A stretch of DNA of 64,000 nucleotides from Guillardia theta CCMP2712 (GCF_000315625.1 NW_005434616.1:434437-498436), one strand, 5' to 3'. Shown: positions 7,934 through 64,000, counted from the stretch's first letter. Notes: generated by a model from the letters alone, not told the origin. Program-made: numbers and translations.

Positions 7934-9854
7934 ATGGCTACACCTGGAGTATCTGATATAGGTCGTGAAAGTTCAGATATAAGCAATATGTCGTGGAGAT
8001 CTGCTGATGAAAGCAGCCCCAACGGGAAGGATGGGAAACTAAAAACGGAGGCTGCAGGAAGCAAGGCTGAAACAGAAACTCATGAAACCCTGGCGATGAA
8101 GCTGCAAAATGCAAGCAATTCAGGAAAAGATAGTGATTTCAAGATATTCCCAAGGCGAAAAGGGGGACAACAAAAGAAAAACAACGACAGTGCACCAGTG
8201 GTTATCACCGCAGAGGTACATTTTATTTGAGCAACTGTGTTCCCATGACATGCTAGCAGTTGCTCGAGACTTGTTTCGAGATGCCACTTGTCGCAGCAGC
8301 GAACAAATTGGGAATTTGTGCGACGGCTCTGAAAAAAGGTGTCTTTCCTATATGAATTTGTGCATGATTTGATCCCTGTTACAGTTTGCCGCAAACTAGG
8401 CATCCACAAATGGTGAATGCTCAGAAAAGAGAGAACCCCTTTCCAGCGGTGACCTTTTGCGTCAGGCCTTATAAGGAAATGAAGCCAAGCCTTTCTCTTT
8501 GCCGAAATCAGGTCGAGTGGTACAAAGGTTGTGTTTCTGTTTCTTATTCTCTCAAAAGGGATTGGCTTGGGATTCCTCTGGAAAATTTGTAAACAATCCG
8601 ATTCCAGAAGCAGGTTCCAGTAACCTTTGCAAGGTGATTCATCAAAGTTTTGTTTGCAACGGAATTGATTTTTTGACTGTAGTCGGATCTTCAAGGAGCA
8701 AAGACCATGACCATAGGCAGTTTGACCAGTCCGGAAAATCGAAAGTTCGAGGGCAGCAGTTCGAAACTACTGTCTAATGGCGATTCGCGTAATGTCGCAT
8801 CGCACGACAATTTTGCAAGTGTGTCGTCGAAAGAATTTTTGGTGAGACCACTGTTTCTTTTGCCTTAATCATCCTTGTCTTGCTTTCTTTGGAATATCTA
8901 CTCATTCTTGTTTCGTGCTGTCTTCAATTATTGTAATGCCGTTGTTTTAGTCATCCAAAACCTCACGGAGCGATGGAGCCGATCTTCTTTCATCTTTGAG
9001 ACTACTTGTGTCGAACAATAGCGCTTCAGATTCACAATCTCAATCCACCTTGCAACCAATTGAGGTTTGAACGCTACTCTTTACTTGAATGGGTCATGAA
9101 TCCGATGCAGGGGCAAAACTCTCACACAAAACAAAGCCATATGCCTAGTTTATCAAGTGCAGCTGGGAGTTCTCCGTCAAAAAATGGTTCAAGAACTTTG
9201 AAGATTGAAGGTCGTGGATAATGCTTGTTTTACATCGTCTGCTACATCTAACTTTGATGTTTTGAAAGAAGGCGGAGATCAATCGAAGGATGAGAAAAGC
9301 TCACATGACGACTACACAGTTTTCCCCAGAAGACGCAATGGAAGAAATCCTCGAGTGGGAGAAAGGGCCCCGGTCGTCGTGACGGAGGAGAAATTAAAGC
9401 AGTGCTTCGATCTTCCTCTACACGTGGCTTCCAAAAAAATGGGGATATGCATTACTGCAATCAAGAAAGTTTGCAGGAAGCTTGGTATCCACAAATGGCC
9501 TTACAGGTGACTCATGCTCTCTTTTTTTCGTTAGCTGCTGTTGACAATGATTTGTTTGAAAGGGACCTAAAAGAGCGAAAAAATGCGGCAGGAAAATCAC
9601 TATCGGAAGGAGGTTTCTCAAACATGGGTGCATTGACAATATCTTCGGAAGGTCCAAGTGTTCCTTTGGAGACATTGAGTGAAGCAAGCGAGTACGCAAG
9701 GCTTCGAGGAGGAGCTGCCGGGGAAGAATCAGACTCAAAGGATTCCGATCCTCAAGAAGCTCAAAGTGACCAGGACAGCAAGTTGAATACGTTGTGCATC
9801 GCAGCCTTGGAACTGTCGCAATCGGATACCAAACAGGGAGGGCAGCGAAGGTAG
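7934..9854 (+). CDS. RWP-RK (NIN-like) transcription factor with two RWP-RK domains
   Basis: Spliced domain 1: ITAE|LLETCFEMPLVAAANKLGICATALKK|VCRKLGIHKW|PYK. Domain 2: VTEEKLKQCFDLPLHVASKKMGICITAIKKVCRKLGIHKWPYR. The intervening exons splice in frame. Confidence 0.88.
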
Positions 9855-11413: not shown

Positions 11414-13041
11414 ATGACGGTCGGCATGGAGGCCGATGAGCAGCATGTCCAGATCTCGCTCACGACGCAGCTCCCGCCTCCTCTTGTGGTGTCCGACCTG
11501 CCCCTGGCTGTTCCTGCGCGTCTTACTCGCCTCGGCCTGTCGGAGGTTGTGAACCATCTCCTGGAGCACGACGAGCCGCGTGCCTTTGACTTCCTCATCG
11601 ATGGCGAGCTGCTCCGCTCATCGTTAGAGGAGCACCTGCGCAGCAAGGGGCTCTCCCTTGAAGAGGTCGTCATTGTGGAGTACTTCCTGGTCCCAAAGAA
11701 ACCAGAGCACACGGAAGATAAGCCGCACGAGGATTGGGTAGCCGGCATCGCCATCTCTTCCTCCTCCAGCGTTCTTACCGCCTCCTACGACAAGACAGGA
11801 CGGATATGGGAGGAAGGCGCTGACGGGCATGCAGCGGTCACGCTCCTTGGGCACGAGGACAGCGCGACATGCTGCACGTGGGTGGAGGAACAAGGGGAGG
11901 GGAGCACTCGATTCGCCATCACCGGCAGCAAAGATTACTCCCTGCTAGCCTTCGCCGTCCCCAAGGGCACGGGCGGGGGGCAGAGCATGCAGCCTTGCTT
12001 CCGCTTCAGAGGGCACGAGGGGGCCGTCCAGGCGGTCGCCTGCAGAGACTCGTTGCTGTGCAGCGCGTCCTGGGACAAGACGATCAAGATCTGGCCGATG
12101 CCGACGGAGAAGGAGCTGGAGGAGCTGGCGGGGAACTCAGGGGAGGCGATCAGCCAGACCGGGAAGAGAAGCAAGGGAGAGGAGGGGAAGCAGGCGGTGA
12201 ACATGAAGGACCGGGGGTGTCTGAGCACGTTGGTGGGGCACACGCAGGCAGTGACAGGGGTGGAGGTGGGAGGGAGACAGGAGATCGTGTCGGGAGGATG
12301 GGACCACACGGTCAAGTCATGGGATGCTGAGAAGCAGCAGTGCCTGACCAACTTGACCTCCAACTCAGCCGTCAATGGCGTCGCCATCTCCCTCTCCGGC
12401 CTCTTTGCCTCCGCCCACGCCGATCGCGCCGTCCGCGTCTGGGACCCTCGAGCTGGGGCTCTGGTGAGGAAGTCGCTGGCGTCGCACAAGGGATGGGTGA
12501 ACGCAGGTTAGCTTTCTACCTGCAAACCCTCCTCTCCCTTCCTCCTCTCCCTCCCTCCTCCCTCCTCTCATCCCGCCATGTTTTGGGGGTCATCAGCTTT
12601 GAGTCGCGTCTTGCCATACGCGCACTCATCGTTCCAGGCCCCAAGATGAAGCTCTCTCTGAGAGGAGGTCTGAACAACCTTGTCTGGCTAAAACAATTGT
12701 TGAGGCCTCTATGGCCCAGCGATCACCAAAGCCAGATAAATCTAATCCTCCTCCTCCTCCTCTTCTTCCTCCTCCTCCTCCTCCGAACTGCTGTGTGCCT
12801 GTTCACCTGAAATGTTCTGTTTGCAGTCAGCTGGAGTCCGAGCTCGGAGCATCATCTTGTCTCCTGCTCTCATGATCACACCATCAAGCTCTGGGACTTT
12901 CGCTCTTCTGTCCCTCTTCACACCATCGCCGCTCATGACGGGAAGGCGCTCTGCGTGAGCTGGGGCAGTGACGGCTTCATCTATAGCGGCGGAAGTGACT
13001 GCAAAGTCTCGCGCTACTCCTGCCCTGCCGCTCTGGCGTGA
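11414..13041 (+). CDS. WDR12: Ribosome biogenesis protein WDR12/Ytm1 (NLE domain + WD40), 2 exons
   Basis: NLE motif LSEVVNHLL...FDFLIDGELLRSSLEEHL...EEVVIVEY, then HEDWV and multiple GH...WD repeats. Intron 12507-12826; exon 2 reads VSWSPSSEHHLVSCSHDHTIKLWDFRS. Confidence 0.95.
12581..12743 (+). ncRNA. Putative intronic box H/ACA sno/scaRNA
   Basis: Two hairpins with internal pockets (TTGGGG/CCCCAA + TGAGTCGCGT/ACGCGCACTCA; TGTCTGGCT/AGCCAGATA + ATTGTTGAGGCC/GGCCCAGCGAT). H box AGATGA lies 15 nt from pocket 1 and an ACA-like AAA lies 14 nt from pocket 2. The host is a ribosome-biogenesis gene. Confidence 0.7.
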
Positions 13042-32314: not shown

Positions 32315-33311
32315 TTGTCGATCCATCGTCGAGCCCTCTGGTCGCTGCTGCCTGTTGCCCGCTCAAGCGCTCCAGCTGTGTTGAGCGCCACCTCCAGGCT
32401 AGCGGGGTCGAGGTTGCAGAGGTTCGAAGCAGCAGCGACGGCAAGGCAGGTATCAGTGTACACGAGGACAGGGGACAAGGGCAAGTCGAGTCTCTACAAC
32501 GGCGAGCGAAGACGCAAGGACGACAAGATCTTCCATGCGCTGGGAGACATCGATGAGCTGAACTCGGCGGTGGGAATCGGGAAGGAGATGATAATCAAGG
32601 AGAAGGTTGAGGACGACATTCTGCTTGCTCGCCTGGAAGACATCCAGTGACTTCCAAGTCTTTATGTGCAACTCGGCAGCTCATGAGCTTGCTAGATGTC
32701 GCCTGCTAGACCTTGGAGCTCACATCGCCACGCCGACGAGCGAAAAGACGGCTGAGAAGGTGAAGAGGATGAAGGTAGAAGACGTCTGGGTGGATGATCT
32801 CGAGCTTTGGATCGACGAGATGGACAAGTATTCCTCCTATCTCCTATGCCTCCACCTGCTTCCCTTGCTCCCTCTCTCATCGTGTCTTGTATCTCTTAGG
32901 GAGCTCCCGCCCCTCAAGAACTTCATCCTCCCCTCCGGGGGGCTTGCAAGTGCAACGCTACACAACGCGAGGACTGTCTGCAGGTTGAGGAGGGGCAGCA
33001 GGGGCGGGAAGGGGAGTGGAGGGGGAGTAGCAAGGGAGCGGTCAAGAGTCTGTTGACGCCTCTTGTTCGGCAGGCGGGCTGAGAGGAACGTCGTGGCGCT
33101 GCAGCAGGACGAGCAAGCAGTCATCGACGCGTCGGCCGTGCGCTACCTGAACCGACTCTCCGACTTTCTCTTCGTCTCTGCTCGTCGCTGGTGACTAGCT
33201 GGAGATTGAGCTTGGGTTGTGCTGAGGGTCAGTTGATGCAGCGCCAAGTTAGCGGGGAAGCCCGAAGCCTTGTACCAGAGCGGCCATGGCCTCAAGACGC
33301 GCTCGCACTGA
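32312..33311 (+). CDS. MMAB: ATP:cob(I)alamin adenosyltransferase (PduO/MMAB type), mitochondrial presequence
   Basis: Motifs VYTRTGDKGKSSL, ALGDIDELNS, LPPLKNFILPSGG, LHNARTVCRRAER and YLNRLSDFLFVSAR. Confidence 0.95.
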
Positions 33312-43886: not shown

Positions 43887-45295
43887 TCCCTGAGCAGAGC
43901 AAATTCTCCATCGGTGGACGAGAGGATTACGAAATTTAAGAACGTGAAAGGTTCGGTAATGTAAAGAATGACCAATGTTTGCCTGGATTTCAAGAATCGT
44001 GCATTCCTGTTCGATTTGCTTTCCCCGACACATCCCCGACATTCGCTCACTCATAAGACTCTCGCACCTTGTCAAAACTGAGAGAAGGTGTGAATGGGAC
44101 TCTGAGAAACACGCAAAGTCTGACCTGAAACAGAAATTCTTGCGGTATTGCTCTCCTGAGACGCACGACATACAACAGATTTGCCGTATGATTTCCACAA
44201 TCACAATCTTATCGGGAGCAGTCAGGTTGACCTTCAGTTTCGACGAATCAGTGCATTTTGATGCAACACAATAAGTGAGATTCAGTTACCTTGTGAGCTC
44301 CCATGTGGCTGATTGTATCAGCAATGGCATGGATGAGCTTTGTTCTGTCCAACGCATGTGAACAAACCTCGAGTCAACGTATTTCGTACTTGTTAGCGCT
44401 GCTATTTTGTCGAACTTGAATATCGACGCGAAACGTGAGCGGTTTTGTGGCATTGAAGTGAGGTTGACACAGCTGTCAATCTGTCATGAGCACGCGAGCA
44501 AGTCTAAGGTCACCTGTAGTGCAAGGTTCGCTGCCTTCTCAGGAGAAGCATAAGTCGTGTTCTCTACAGGGATTAAGCGCTTCAAAGAATGAAACATGTC
44601 GAGCGAGATGTTGTTCGTCACGATCTTTTCAAACAATCGCGTTGTGAAGGTATTGGGGTCCTCTCCTATGCGATCAATCCACCGAACGAATACCTAAAAT
44701 ATCGATCACATAGGTCGAGGATAGGGGCACAGCAAACCAGTCCTTTCACTTCTGTGAATGAGTGAGTTTTCTTCTTTGACTGGGGATAGAGGTGCTCATC
44801 TTCTAGGTCATCGATCTCCTCCTTGATGATGTCACTCAGTCGTCTCTTCCCGTCAAGCTCCTGACGGATTGGGGTCTCGGGTTCCTTCTGATCCAACCTA
44901 AAGTGGTCGAAGAGCAATGCTACATGCTTGTACCCAACGTCCTGCCATCCTCGACGTCGCGGGTTGACTGAGAAGATCATTCCTTGCGACCCATTTCGAA
45001 GATTGTCAAACGTCAGCTCCTCTTCCTCCCCTTCTCTGATCCTCCGTTTCTTCCTTGGGAAGTACTTTCTGCGCTCTGATCTCGTCGCTCGACCCCCTTG
45101 CAGGCGGAGGAAGAGACGGAGGCACGATGTGGAAGTAGGAGCAGCAGGAGCAGCAGGAGCAGCAGGAGCAGCAGGAGCAGCAGGAGCAGCAGGAGCAGCA
45201 GGAGCAGCAGGAGCAGCAGGAGCAGCAGCAGGAGGGTAGCAGGCAGTCATGAGCAGGATTGCGGCATGCAGCATCAATGTCGCGATTGGCCGCAT
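43875..45295 (-). CDS. THUMPD1: THUMPD1/Tan1-like THUMP-domain protein with signal peptide and presequence ending LRLQGG (putative periplastid/nucleomorph-targeted)
   Basis: Spliced motifs GSQGMIFSVN, LKRLIPVENTTYAS and HKVNLTAPDKIVIVEIIRQICCMSCV match the Tan1/THUMPD1 pattern (KVDLxxP...VVEII...CCLSVV). 3' end approximate. Confidence 0.75.
45139..45231 (-). repeat. 9-bp coding repeat encoding (PAA)n in the presequence
   Basis: (GGAGCAGCA)n, about 10 copies. Confidence 0.9.
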
Positions 45296-57147: not shown

Positions 57148-59877
57148 CTACCTCTCTCTCTCTCTCTCGATCCAGGCTTGTCGTTTCAGTGCTATCGCGG
57201 TCCTGAGATACTCGTACGTCTCGTGCCATCTTTCAGGTCCAGTCCACTCCTGCCATAGCACATCAAAGAAGTGTGAGCAGCAGGCAAATTCAGCTGACAT
57301 CGAGCGGGCTTCGTCGCATTTGTCCTTTGGTTGGTTTATACTCCACGGTGGCAAAGTGAAGACACATCTTCTGCCTGCAATCTCGACTCATTTCCCTCTC
57401 CTCCTCACATCTTCTTCTTCTCACGCTTGCATGATGCAGTTTTCTCCCAGATCGTTCTGTGCCAGCAAATCGCCTCCAGCCTCCACCAACACCTGCGAGA
57501 TGCTTGACAAGAGACGAGAGCAACAGAGAGGTTCGTCACCTGCACCGCGTCTTTGTGACCCCAGTGGATGGCAGCCATCAAGGGGGTGTGGGAGGCTTCG
57601 TTTCGAGCTTCAAGGTTGGCCCCATGAGCGACTAGAGCTCTTATCGCCTCCACGTGTCCCTCATGTGCCGCCCAGTGCAGAGCGGTGAAGCATGGCGCAT
57701 ACTTGAGCCCTCGACCTCTCACCCCCCCATCCAGCTCGATTGGGATGCCAGCGGAGAGAAGGCGGCTGATTGCTCGGCATGAGTTGTTCCTCGCAGCATA
57801 ATGCAGGGCCGTCCAGTTGCCATGGTCCCTCGCCAGGACATCAGCTCCGTGTCTCACTAGCACTGCTATGTTGTCATCCTTGTCCTGATTTGCAGCATGA
57901 TGCAATGCTGTGCACATTTGAACCTCCGGATCTCTGGCGTTAATGTCCACCTTGTACACTGTGAGAAACTCGTCTAAGTCCTCCTCATCGCCAAAAGCTG
58001 CCACGTTCCAGAAAGTTCGTTTGAGGACCCAATCGTAGGTTGAATCCTCCCTGCTCTCATTAAGAAATGAGTTGATTTGCCATGGTTGCCTTTTCCATGT
58101 CCGATTGCAGACATCACATAAAACGTCTGTTGCATGCAGAAGGTAATGCAATCTGAGCCTCCCATTATTGAAACGCCTCTCGTTGGCAAGGGAGATGTGA
58201 TTTCTGTCGAAAAACTTGGAAAGATTATATTTCTTCAGCTCTCTTTGGTGTGATTTGCTTCCTCTCGCTGCAAGCTGTGTCATGTTCAAGATCTTTGAGT
58301 AGAATCTTCTTGTTTCTTTTGACATCCAGTGCTTTGCCAAATGGCTTGGAGGAAGAGTGGAACAATACCTGCAGTCACCAGAAACCCACTGATTGTATTT
58401 CAAGCGGAGGCGCGTTAGCTGACTATCAGGTACTCGTCGATCCGAAAATGACCAATATCCAACTGTAGATTCTTTCAATAATTTGATCCATTTATTGTAT
58501 TCTTGGTCTTCATCGATCTTGAAATGCACATCCGGCAGATTGTACCTGAATCCAAGAGTGAAACAGATCGCAAAAGGATTTCATGGCAACCTGCCGTTGA
58601 AAAGTCGTTCTCGAAAGAACTTGGTGCAAATTTTCCCTCCGTATGGGTTGCCAAAGTAGCGTCCGTGTCTGCCTCGCATCGGCTCTGCAAGTCTTTTCAG
58701 GGACCAACAATCTTTCATCTCCAATACTACCACAATACAATGTTCCGTTGTGCGCGCAGAAGACTTCCCATTCTTTGCTGCTGTTTCACAATTCAGAAGC
58801 TGGAATTTCGATGTCACTTGCCTGTCTCGTGTCAAAGCTTCCTCATAAACCCGGCAGCATTCTTCTTCGTTTACAGGAGGCAACAACCATGCACCCTAGA
58901 AAATGTTCAGAGCAAGACCAGCGATCTTGAATAGCTTACAAAAGAGGAATTCGACTCCTCAGGCGAGAAGAACACGGAGCCCGGAAAAGCATAGAGAGTC
59001 TCGCCTGGATAGAGCACACTGCCGTCGCACAAGCGACGAGCAATTCCATCCTCATCGCCCCTGAATGATGTCAAACACGACCCGGGATCATCTGTCCTTG
59101 GTTCGCCAGGGATGGGGCTTGGGAACGGAGAGGAAGTAGGAGCAAAGGCAAGCATGTGGTGAGGACGCTTGTTGGAGCTTCCTATGCATGGAATAGGACA
59201 ATTGATCTGCATGAAGCATGAGATGCTTGCTACCCGATGATTCAACGTACTTGCGACGGCGCTGTAAGCAAGAGCGCCCCATGCCCAGCAACTACAAAAG
59301 TGAAATTCTCACCAGGACGAACGTCGAAGGGGATTGGAACTTCGATCACTAAGATGCAAAGTGACACGCTGTTGCAAAGCAAATAGGAAGTCACCTTTCA
59401 GGGGATAGCGAGGTCGAGGATTTCCCGTGGTGTGCCGAACATGAACACTATGATGGTCTAGCACCTCAATTTTTTTATCTTGCTTGTTGATTACGACACG
59501 AACATCTTTTGGAAGCTCCAACTCCTCGTGATGGAGATCTATTGTCATGTCTTCGTCTGGAATCATTTGGTCTTGTGGAGTTTCATCTTCAGTCGTCTCG
59601 TCCGAGAGGTTTTCACTCGAAGTCAGTTTGTAACGATCACTCCCTGAACTTCGCTTCAATCGCGATGATGAATCAAAATCAGACCCCCCACGGAGCTTGA
59701 TCCAAGGTTGCCTTTCAGCGCTTCCATGTGTCTTCAAGAGCTGAAAATCAACACATCTCTCATACCTGCAACTTGATGGGATCAAAGAACGGAGATCAAG
59801 GACGCAAGGATGTACCGTGTGGACGTTGAATGAGAGAGAAGTAAGAGCAAGACAGTGGTCAAAGACAGGCGATGCAT
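57148..59877 (-). CDS. Ankyrin-repeat protein with signal peptide and presequence ending IKLRGG
   Basis: Ankyrin repeats TALHHAA, TALHYAA, TALHWAAHEGH and TPLMAA. Spliced N-terminus MHRLSLTTVLLLLLSHSTST|RYERC...PWIKLRGG. Confidence 0.8.
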
Positions 59878-60227
59878 CTCTTTTCATTCACCGAACGAGT
59901 TTCTTCTTTCACCTGGGAGAAACATGCGGACATGTTGCCATCGCCTGCTTGTGCCTGGATGCTCGGCGAGATCAAACCCATCACGAAGCTTGCATGGGTT
60001 GTTTGAGATCAAGCTCACCTCAGAGTCCTCACGCTGCTAGCTACTAAAAGCTCTAGCTAGGCGACCCATATAAGGTAGGTGGTTTTCGCTGCCTCCTTCG
60101 TTTCCTAGTATTTTATTGAGGCGGGTTTGTAGGCTCTATCCTCCCCCTCCTTTGTTTGCTCCGGTTTGCCCTTCTTTTTCAGTCAATATAGGTGGTGATC
60201 CCAGAAATTCCCTTCATGCGATCTTCT

Positions 60228-60549
60228 GCACCATCCTTGTACCATCCCATCTCTTGCCTTGTACCATCCCTTGTACCATCCCTTGTACCATCCCTTGTAC
60301 CATCCCTTGTACCATCTCTTGTACCATCTCTTGCCTTGTACCATCCGTTGTACCATCTCTTGCCTTGTACCATCTCTTGCCTTGTACCATCCCTTGTACC
60401 ATCTCTTGCCTTGTACCATCCTTTGTTGTACCATCCCTTGTACCATCCCTTGTACCATTCCTTGTACCATGTCTTGCCTTGTACCATCTCTTGCCTTGTA
60501 CCATCTCTTGCCTTGTACCATCTCTTGCCTTGTACCATCCCTTGTACCA
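60228..60549. repeat. Minisatellite of mixed 12-bp (CCTTGTACCATC) and 17-bp (TCTTGCCTTGTACCATC) units
   Basis: More than 20 TTGTACCA cores, between divergent genes. Confidence 0.93.
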
Positions 60550-60637: not shown

Positions 60638-63541
60638 ATGAGCGGTAAGAAGTCGAATTTTATATCTAAGCGAAACGTTGTCGCCAGTTGGGTTCCGACA
60701 AATCTAGAAGAAGAGTTTGCAGATGAGTTCAAACACGTGTACTTCATAGCTGTACTGCTCTTCAGCGTCATACTCAGTGTATATGTTGCAACCATGCACA
60801 GATCAGTTTCTGGGGGCGACAATGGTGAGCTTCTTGGATGTGCTTGTGAGCTGGGGATTGCACATCCGCCTGGATATCCCACCTTCACCGTTCTCGGGCA
60901 TTTTTTTGTTCGCTTCTTCCCGTTCGGAACTCCAGCATTTCGCGTTGCATTCATGTCCGGAACATGCGATGCTCTCGCAGGGGTCCTAGTGATGCTTTCT
61001 GTGCATCGATGGTTTCTGTTGGAATCAACGCTGGAGAAGAAAAGCGTGGCTCAGGCGTGGGTTGGCTCTGTTTGGCCATCGTTGCTTGCTGGTGGATTGT
61101 ATTCTCTCTGTCCTCTAGTTTGGATGTACTCAGTTCAAGCAGAAGTGTTTGCTATGAACAATTTTTTTGCGGCGCTATTGATTTACTTGATCCTGAGGTT
61201 CAATGAAAAGAGAAGCCTGAAGCTTGCTTGTTTGGGCTCATTTTCTATTGGACTTGGTCTTACCAACCAACATACTCTTGTTCTATTCGCACTTCCGGGT
61301 AATTCTGGATATTCTTGACGTGCAAGCTGCAAATGACAGATTGACAGTTGTTGTTTGGAGCTTGTTTGTTGGCAGAAATGTTTTGATCAATGTTCGAGCC
61401 ATCTCGCTTCTTTCTTTCTGTGGTCTTGTGGGGTTGACGCCGTACGTGTTCTTGTTCACTCATGCGAAGTACGCTCCACTTGGATCATGGGGAGACACGT
61501 CGACATTTGATGGCTTCATGACACACTTTCTGCGGAAAGAATATGGAACCTTCCAATTGTATTCCGGCAATGATATGCAGGTCAAATATGGAGTGCAGCA
61601 TTGCTACTCTTAAACCTTATTACAGCAAAAACAAGTCCTTGTGGCGACATTGCGGTATTTCAAACAGGTAAATGTATTCGTGTCTTGACTTTTTCTTACT
61701 GTCGTGAAAGTTTCTGCTTGATGGTCTTTACATTGGTGCACCTCTCATGCTTCTCGGACTAGTCGACTCAGTGCAAGCGAGGATGCGAAATCCCCATCGA
61801 TCTCCGGTCACTGTGATAGTTGGGGCGTGGATTACCTACTTGTTGGTGTTTCACTCCTTATCAAATCTTCCTATCGACAAACTTCCTTTGTTTCTTGGTA
61901 TCCACATGCGTTTTTGGATGCAGCCGCACATTATCTCTTTCATGATTCTTGGGAAAGGACTCAAGGTTAGCCAAACACTCACTCCCAGCTTGTTCGCTGA
62001 GAGCTCGCAGCCATTTTTGGAAAGAATTTCATGCTGGAAAGCGCAATTTGTTATCCCAGCAGTGCTCTTGATTCTGTTCGCTCAAGTTGGAATCAACTAT
62101 AAGTAATCCAGCCGTCAGCATGAAATTGTGTTGATCTTTTTTCCAGGTCTATGGATCAAAGTAAGAATTTGCACGTGCGAGATCTTGGTAGGAAGCACCT
62201 TGAATTTCTCCCGCCCAACACGATCCTTATCTCGCAGGGCGACCTTGTGACTAACTCGATGAGGTGAAAAGGATAAGTAGTAATGAAGCTGAGTGCTGTG
62301 GTTTCAGATACCTGCAACGATGTGAAAAGTACAGGACGGATGTTCTTCTTCTTGACGAGACCATGATGACCTACAAATGGATGAGAAACAATCAAGGTAT
62401 TCTGTTGTTCTCATGATTCTTCGATTTGATTGCGGTTTCAGGCCCTCGTATGAAAAAATGGAAAATCAAGTTTCCGAATGAGTTGCACTCTCCTAACCCA
62501 ATGGCAAACACGTAAAAACCTCGCTGCCTATCATTTATGCTGCTATGTTGCTCACTTTGCATGGTAGGTACACTATGGAAGAGTTCCTGGCAGTTAACGG
62601 AAGAAACCCAAAGTTCCCTGTCTTCAAAGCTGTAAGATTCACAATCCCCTCGCTGCTGCCCTGACGCGCTTTCTGCAGGGAGCATGGCTAGGAGGCGTGA
62701 TGGGTCGCCAAGACAGTGGAGTCCCGTCTTGGCACACGGTTCCGGTGGGATTGGTGTCAGCAGTGATGAGAAAAGGACGGGACATGTCGAACGAAGAGTG
62801 GCTTGAGTGGTTCAACAAGATTGATCTCTTTCCGCAAGAACCGGATTTCTTTGCTTTCGACGACAGAACGTGGGAGTGGCTTATGCGCAGGATCATCTTG
62901 GAGTGGCGCGCCAAGGTAGGGTTTCGCTTCTCAAACTTGGCGGTGGAGAAAGCAAACGCGTTGGGCGAGAGAGCTTGGCTTGACCGCGCCGAGACGTATA
63001 TCGCCGACGTACTACGATTGGAGGAGATTGCTCATGGGCACGAGCCGAAGACTTACATCCTTGCTGACCTTTACAACGCGCTCGGGATGCTACAAGTGCA
63101 CATCCAACACTTCCTCACGTCTCGGGAAGAGATCATCGAGTCCAATCGAAAGATTGCCAAGTTCTTCGCCCTCTACGTTGAAAAGAGTCCCAAGCCTGAC
63201 ATCAGCAGCTCGCAGGAGGCTAGTCTCGTGACCTTCCTGCAGCAGAACCCCAGCTACGACCAGATGATCATCCCCAAGGAGAACTTGGATGCGCAGACAG
63301 CTGAGTTGGCAAAGGAGGTAAGAGAGCTGAGAACGTCTTCTTGCAAGAAAACGAACTGATTACAAATAGAAGGCGAAAGCGACAGAGCCTGTAAGCGAGT
63401 CCGCGAGGTAACTCGCGCAACATGTGTGGAAATATTGTTGAATTTCGAGGTTTTAGGTCGAGCAAACAGAGCAAGTCTTCCAAGAAAGGGAAGAAAGCGA
63501 AAGATCCGAATAAGAAGAAGCGCAAGAATGCTGAGTTGTAA
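60638..63541 (+). CDS. TMEM260: TMEM260 / DUF2723 GT-C protein O-mannosyltransferase
   Basis: [10 protein letters not shown]...[46 protein letters not shown]...RFWMQP. The last exons splice to ...KKRKNAEL*. Confidence 0.92.
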
Positions 63542-63900: not shown

Positions 63901-64000
63901 TCCTACAAACAATGTCAAGTTACCCCCCCCCCCTCTCTCTCCCTCTCCCCCACTGGAGGGGGTGGGGGGGGGGGGGGGGGGGGCGGCTTGAGGTACTCAA

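Follow-up and report, generated by a model that had tools for sequence, protein, structure and literature searches.

An ankyrin-repeat protein of Guillardia theta carries a probable periplastid leader that ends in the ubiquitin-type motif LRGG

The ankyrin-repeat gene GUITHDRAFT_153795 of Guillardia theta CCMP2712 encodes a protein whose first 48 residues comprise a signal peptide for the endoplasmic reticulum (ER; residues ~1-20), a positively charged spacer and the motif LRGG. We consider it rather probable (about 0.7) that this is a bipartite leader for the periplastid compartment (PPC), the relict cytoplasm of the red-algal endosymbiont, and that LRGG forms its end, probably as the cut site of a ubiquitin-type protease; the periplastid destination of the ankyrin protein, the cut after GG and the kind of protease are what we infer from the evidence given below. 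The gene lies in a stretch of 64,000 nucleotides (GCF_000315625.1 NW_005434616.1:434437-498436), hereafter the window, from whose first letter positions are counted. Its leader appears to be a further, evolutionarily well conserved example of periplastid leaders that end in LRGG, a class that seems not to have been described.

The leader is read across an intron. According to a preliminary description of the window, removal of an intron of about 50 bp joins a signal peptide to a spacer, IKLRGG and a part rich in Ser, Asp and Glu, and this is precisely what two MMETSP proteins contain, P0004 (755 aa, Transcript_31198) and P0005 (375 aa, Transcript_31197), whose N-termini are identical to the spliced model. 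Since both begin with the exact spliced sequence, the signal-peptide exon and its splice are present in cDNA; a cDNA without this exon, which the same description had named as the observation that would speak against it, is thus not what the two assembled transcripts provide. A word search started from the large ankyrin exon led to MMETSP proteins whose cluster contains, besides P0004 and P0005, NCBI EKX41691.1/XP_005828671.1, the hypothetical protein GUITHDRAFT_153795 of G. theta CCMP2712. This public model (P0003) has 329 aa, begins with MTQLAARG and is devoid of the leader and the N-terminal 426 residues. It is truncated; what the transcript protein has in addition is the leader and an N-terminal half that is conserved.

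The coding region runs on the minus strand from the ATG at 59877-59875 to a TAG at 57150-57148 and yields, by transcript, a full-length product of 755 aa (Table 1). Exon 2 begins at 59765, where its translation opens with (R)YERCVDFQLLKTHGSAERQPWIKLRGGSDFDSSS..., and ends at 59395 (..PRYPLK). Beyond the 46-nt intron that follows, comparison of P0004 with the genome places several further introns of 44-51 nt, and the gene holds several more short introns than the list of open reading frames (ORFs) implies. The isoform Transcript_31197 keeps downstream introns, whereby the ORF is split into P0005 and P0001. An in-frame TGA (59886-59884) stands 9 nt 5' of the signal-peptide ATG.

Table 1. Coordinates of the ankyrin-repeat gene and its leader, counted from the first letter of the window
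Feature	Position	Strand	Content or basis
Ankyrin-repeat gene GUITHDRAFT_153795, whole coding region	57148..59877	-	Exon-by-exon match of P0004 to the window
Exon 1	59816..59877	-	Encodes the signal peptide MHRLSLTTVLLLLLSHSTST and two bases of an Arg codon
Intron 1, 50 nt, GT-AG	59766..59815	-	Removed in P0004 and P0005; both splice sites also in L134
Spacer, transit-peptide-like	59696..59765	-	(R)YERCVDFQLLKTHGSAERQPWIK; exon 2 translation
LRGG, protein residues 45-48	59684..59695	-	Same as the last four residues of ubiquitin
Exon 2 remainder	59395..59683	-	Ser/Asp/Glu-rich linker SDFDSSS...DETTEDETPQDQMIPDED, then onset of the conserved N-terminal domain DVRVVINKQDKKIEVLD..TGNPRPRYPLK
Intron 2, 46 nt, GT-AG	59349..59394	-	P0004 junction ..PRYPLK/VIEVPIPF.. 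set against the genome
Ankyrin repeats (Pfam Ank, Ank_2, Ank_4)	57540..58004	-	Pfam search
Upstream ATG, out of frame, T at -3	59885..59887	-	10 nt 5' of the signal-peptide ATG

All parts of a signal peptide are recognizable in the first exon, namely a short n-region (MHR), a leucine-rich, uncharged h-region of 11 residues (LSLTTVLLLLL; mean Kyte-Doolittle value 2.84 over 9 residues) and a c-region of small and polar residues (SHSTST). Cuts that obey the -3/-1 rule, after S17, S19 or T20, place T or R at position +1, the cut site being a heuristic call. The small-x-small-aromatic pattern is absent at these predicted cuts; Y22, however, lies 2-5 residues downstream. The published sorting determinant is the residue after the signal peptide. 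From the end of the h-region to LRGG there are 32 residues with a net charge of +2, which lies within the range of the 37 leaders tabulated in this study. A Pfam search of exon 2 returned no family, and thus no match to ubiquitin, with which only four residues are shared. Neither is there a sign of the beta-grasp fold that would precede a C-terminal LRGG in ubiquitin, given the lack of a Pfam match and the unrelated sequences that stand before LRGG among the homologues.

The ankyrin family makes a clear evolutionary case, since all complete homologues retain the motif while its surroundings all change. Homologues came from a full HMMER search, for which residues 1-340 were the query, and from a subsequent word search with a profile. 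In 6/6 homologues with complete N-termini, a strong hydrophobic segment and exactly one LRGG stand ahead of the conserved domain (pattern DV.V.ID...R.I.VLD..G....TG.PR...E..P..V.P.Q.F.Y..AGHG), while the remaining leader is dissimilar. The motif reads IKLRGG in the G. theta protein P0004 (position 45), TRLRGG in P0011 (position 52), IHLRGG in P0014 (position 68), IVLRGG in P0042 (position 68), LVLRGG in P0043 (position 74) and LRLRGG in P0019 (position 101). By composition, LRGG is expected by chance at 3.7e-5 per residue, that is about 0.3% for the 75-residue zone behind the signal peptide. Homologues without LRGG are likewise without a signal peptide and are evidently incomplete gene calls; P0009, for example, is the short form of P0019.

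Comparison at shorter distance locates the conservation more closely. A Hanusia phi fragment (P0008, EukProt) with the motif IQLRGG reads ..KGIQLRGGSNFDSS, as compared to ..PWIKLRGGSDFDSS in G. theta; LRGG and the residues following it (S[DN]FDSS) are kept, whereas the preceding residues differ, and in more distant homologues the spacer becomes unalignable. On the metagenome contig L134, which carries a relative ~97% identical in DNA, the ATG and both splice sites of intron 1 are kept, the signal peptide shows only the conservative changes V9L, L14F and H16R, and the spacer has three replacements (Q->E, K->N and H->P). There, LRGG is intact, with a single synonymous change (GGG->GGA). In the marine metagenome contigs L131-L133 (GC 65-74%), P0043 and the 749-aa ankyrin protein P0013 turned out to be two exons of one gene, in which the order is signal peptide, LVLRGG, conserved domain, ~113-nt intron and 749-aa ankyrin part (L131:2929-6152; also L132 and L133). 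If the organism behind these contigs is not a cryptophyte, the LRGG leader would be more widespread. Altogether, the ankyrin gene has one [L]RGG in the zone 15-90 residues behind the signal peptide, where the leader adjoins the conserved or mature portion, and its homologues retain the motif while the spacer drifts. Judged from these sequences, the LRGG of the ankyrin gene is not a matter of chance.

The same combination recurs across the genome assembly (87.1 Mb, 669 contigs). From the listed matches to a back-translated LRLRGG pattern the first 60 were used without selection, and for each we asked for a Met and an uncharged hydrophobic 9-mer 10-130 residues upstream in the same open frame, with the five other frames at the same sites as a control. 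A signal peptide so defined precedes 27 of the 60 LRLRGG-type sites, as opposed to 3 of 300 control frames (Fisher p=7e-21), and several more are visible by eye. For KLRGG, the variant found in the ankyrin gene, the counts are 6/40 true sites versus 1/200 in the control (p=9e-5). This points to a strong genome-wide association between LRGG and predicted signal peptides. Among the 37 tabulated leaders the distance from Met to GG has a median of 54 residues (range 35-115), the spacers are mostly net positive, and GG is followed by G, S, M, T, Q or others, and by P in none. With 48 aa up to GG, a spacer charge of +2 and an S after GG, the ankyrin leader is typical of this set.

What these leaders are attached to bears on their destination. 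For the aminoacyl-tRNA synthetases of G. theta, Gile et al. 2015 (PMC4494062) distinguish predicted copies for the cytosol, for the PPC and for plastid/mitochondrion, with one PPC copy each of TrpRS (trpRS3) and AspRS (aspRS3), and the N-terminal extension of Gt_TyrRS1 sent green fluorescent protein (GFP) to the periplastid 'blob', and also to the cytosol, in Phaeodactylum (PMC4494062). Both published cloning primers of Gt_TyrRS1 match locus L101, and the cloned piece consists of a signal peptide, a spacer and HEKLRGG. The locus of a eukaryote-type TrpRS encodes a signal peptide and VVRLRGG, and that of an AspRS a signal peptide and ERMCLRGG in a single ORF with OB-fold and class II domains; going by the type of copy rather than by accession, we take these loci to be trpRS3 and aspRS3, the copies predicted for the PPC. 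Furthermore, in a copy of EF-1alpha (L015; G000:C3:1064484-1066100, minus strand) a signal peptide opens a leader whose last residues, ...LRLRGG, directly precede GKEKHHCSIVVIGHVDSGKST (GKEKHH...), where the GTP_EFTU domain match starts. We read the start after LRLRGG as the putative mature N-terminus, and consider this EF-1alpha copy a candidate for a translation factor in the relict cytoplasm. Further LRGG leaders precede a protein with a SAP domain, one of the LisH/WDR26 type, a methyltransferase and a RETICULATA-like protein. The SAP, LisH and methyltransferase cargoes, like the THUMPD1 protein described below, are of cytosolic or nuclear types. In contrast, the bacterial-type TrpRS, which is of the plastid/mitochondrion type, reads ..AGCFA/FRTPF at the predicted signal-peptide cut and has no xRGG.

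Within the window, the preliminary description had set non-plastid signal-peptide proteins with an LRGG-like motif against plastid-type ones without it, and this division holds. Next to the ankyrin protein with IKLRGG, LRLQGG stands behind the signal peptide of THUMPD1 (ATG 45295, minus strand), whereas in CYP38 (ATG 51119, minus strand; Pfam CYP38_PsbQ-like; ..SPCFC/FAPS) and a Methyltransf_32 protein (ATG 18031, plus strand; ..GAEA/WQG) the signal peptide is followed by an aromatic residue and xRGG is lacking. The periplastid reading that the description gave to the ankyrin leader likewise gains in likelihood, as the same layout occurs on Gt_TyrRS1, TrpRS, AspRS and EF-1alpha while the three aromatic leaders are without LRGG. 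A perfect (AAP)n repeat (PAAAPAAPAAP...) makes up the spacer that joins the signal peptide of THUMPD1 to LRLQGG (45100-45240, minus strand); hence, the content of the spacer is apparently free as long as its ends are kept. Long open frames of the window contain four LRGG hits including that of the ankyrin gene. The others were rejected as leaders: that at 32917 (minus strand) is antisense to a cobalamin adenosyltransferase exon, that at 9702 (plus strand) is internal to an RWP-RK protein, and that at 12658 (plus strand) lies downstream of a WD-repeat (WDR12-like) exon ending at 12511 and has no signal peptide.

In the mechanism that we propose, the ankyrin precursor would enter the ER lumen co-translationally, where its signal peptide would be removed, and would then reach the PPC by a SELMA-type transfer across the periplastid membrane. 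We suppose that it stays there because no aromatic residue seems to stand directly behind the signal peptide. An LRGG-specific ubiquitin-type cysteine protease would subsequently cut after GG, so that the mature protein would start with SDFDSS. This cleavage is suggested by the boundary in EF-1alpha, by the conservation that begins after GG, by the identity with the ubiquitin tail and by the deubiquitinase system of the diatom PPC, where a ubiquitin system with the deubiquitinase ptDUP has been described (PMC3101018).

The main rival is that LRGG belongs to a periplastid leader but is not cut, and instead acts as a recognition or retention element, to which, for example, the SELMA ubiquitin machinery or a receptor in the PPC would bind, so that proteins would be kept in the PPC instead of passing on through the plastid envelope. 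Such a role would suit both the presence of LRGG on leaders with a non-aromatic +1 residue, together with its lack on the three aromatic ones, and the ubiquitin-dependent import route of the periplastid (PMC3101018). Yet, LRGG abuts the putative mature N-terminus in EF-1alpha, and in the ankyrin family Guillardia and Hanusia agree from directly after GG and diverge before it. As such, the position in EF-1alpha and the onset of conservation are easier to reconcile with a boundary or cut site than with an internal signal; that P follows GG in 0/37 leaders is a further, weak point in the same direction. We hence regard recognition without cleavage as unlikely, though it is the alternative to be reckoned with most.

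It is improbable that the form with the signal peptide is a minor one and that initiation takes place mainly at the upstream ATG of an intron-retaining mRNA, or at internal ATGs, to give a cytosolic ankyrin protein. The unspliced ORF 59887-59309 is indeed open, downstream introns are retained in a second isoform (P0001 and P0005, Transcript_31197), and the NCBI model starts internally. However, intron 1 is spliced out in both assembled transcripts, the context of the upstream ATG is weak (T at -3), the signal peptide is kept in distant homologues, and the close relative shows conservative changes in the frame of the signal peptide (V->L, L->F and H->R), whereas those in the frame of the upstream ATG include C->S and S->F (P0006 compared to the unspliced ORF). 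Hardly credible is an ordinary secretory or endomembrane protein with LRGG by chance or composition, for although a signal peptide by itself does not fix the destination, and KLRGG-type sites as a whole are not in excess in the genome (430 versus 540 in the control, only the signal-peptide-linked subset being enriched), the motif recurs in all complete homologue N-termini against odds of about 0.3%, its link to signal peptides is strong genome-wide, aminoacyl-tRNA synthetases and EF-1alpha have no role in the secretory path, and ankyrin repeats typically occur in the cytosol or nucleus.

Several points weigh against a periplastid leader that is cut at LRGG. Deubiquitinases normally require the ubiquitin fold plus the tail; since this fold is absent before LRGG, a classical enzyme of this kind may reject so short a tag. 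Signal peptides and cleavage sites were called by a hydrophobicity heuristic, not by SignalP, and the plastid-type comparison set is small, consisting of three leaders (bacterial-type TrpRS, CYP38 and the methyltransferase). The GFP signal obtained with Gt_TyrRS1 is partly cytosolic and comes from a diatom host, not from G. theta. On the spliced mRNA the upstream ATG would open an upstream ORF of 25 codons, and with intron 1 retained its frame would run into exon 2 without the signal peptide; the upstream ORF from the ATG at 59887 could reduce translation of the signal-peptide form. Finally, the RETICULATA-like protein (L016; G000:C4:67302-68918, plus strand) has a signal peptide and an LRLRGG leader, and the RETICULATA family in plants consists of plastid-envelope proteins. 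The LRGG class may thus include membrane proteins of the plastid complex.

We also put forward a wider proposal, namely that LRGG is cut by a periplastid-resident ubiquitin-type protease, so that the ubiquitin machinery of import would also mature resident proteins, that the mark extends beyond Guillardia, as the homologous gene on L131-L133 suggests, and that it may be a general signature separating periplastid from secreted or stromal proteins in algae with red-derived complex plastids. This proposal is tentative, and on balance we would sooner doubt it than back it. Periplastid proteins of algae with complex plastids have so far been hard to predict, and we know of no processing protease for those that reside in the PPC. 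If conserved, LRGG at the leader end would be an easily read label by which proteins of the periplastid and nucleomorph could be catalogued, would help to correct truncated gene models such as GUITHDRAFT_153795, and would point to an enzyme class for leader removal that is tied to the ubiquitin-dependent import machinery. A full-text literature search, with subscription-only papers outside its scope, returned no paper in which LRGG or LRLRGG is linked to the periplastid, to Guillardia, to plastids or to transit peptides, except for an unrelated cyanelle paper, and no such motif is mentioned in ASAFind 2.0 or by Moog et al. 2011 (PMC3101018), who describe the second part of the periplastid leader as unconserved.

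As to the mature protein, Pfam assigns the C-terminal part of P0004 to Ank_2 (90.6 bits) and Ank (80.6 bits), above gathering scores. For the non-ankyrin half, no Pfam family and no usable hit in an Atlas search were obtained; its AlphaFold model (19-row alignment) has a mean predicted local distance difference test value (pLDDT) of 49, and Foldseek against the PDB found nothing at E<=0.001. From an N-terminal half without family match and C-terminal ankyrin repeats, our guess is that the mature ankyrin protein serves as an interaction or scaffold protein.

The gene is separated from a divergently oriented TMEM260-like O-mannosyltransferase gene (first exon 60638-61318, plus strand) by an intergenic region of ~750 bp, which contains a degenerate tandem array (60230-60544) with units of 12, 17 and 29 bp (ACCATCCCTTGT and CTTGTACCATCTCTTGC) in ~14-18 copies with 74-77% matches. 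Downstream of the TMEM260-like gene, near the end of the window, lies a long inverted stretch of C-runs and G-runs (63921-63990; ccccccccc...ggggggggggggggg).

Among known systems, the effector leaders of oomycetes (RxLR-dEER) and Plasmodium (PEXEL) have a similar layout, in which a signal peptide is followed within ~30-60 residues by a short conserved motif and thereafter by an acidic stretch. PEXEL is cut by a protease, and this site determines further trafficking. Both differ from the ankyrin leader in the motif, in the organism, G. theta being a free-living alga, and in the destination, so that the likeness is one of logic and not of homology. With the ubiquitin C-terminus, LRLRGG, at which deubiquitinases and LXGG-specific papain-like proteases act, the ankyrin leader shares the last four residues and many other leaders share six, and the boundary position would allow a cut after GG. 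In ubiquitin, however, a fold precedes LRGG and in the ankyrin leader none does. In PPC proteins the leader combines a signal peptide with a transit-peptide-like part that lacks an aromatic +1 residue, as Gould et al. 2006 and Gruber et al. 2007 are cited in PMC3101018 and PMC4494062. With this bipartite targeting sequence of cryptophytes and diatoms, the ankyrin leader has in common the signal peptide, a positive and non-conserved spacer and a cargo that is normally cytosolic or nuclear; an aromatic residue directly after the likely cut also seems to be lacking. Whereas the transit-peptide-like part of the published sequence is unconserved and poorly characterised (PMC3101018), the ankyrin leader ends in a conserved LRGG.

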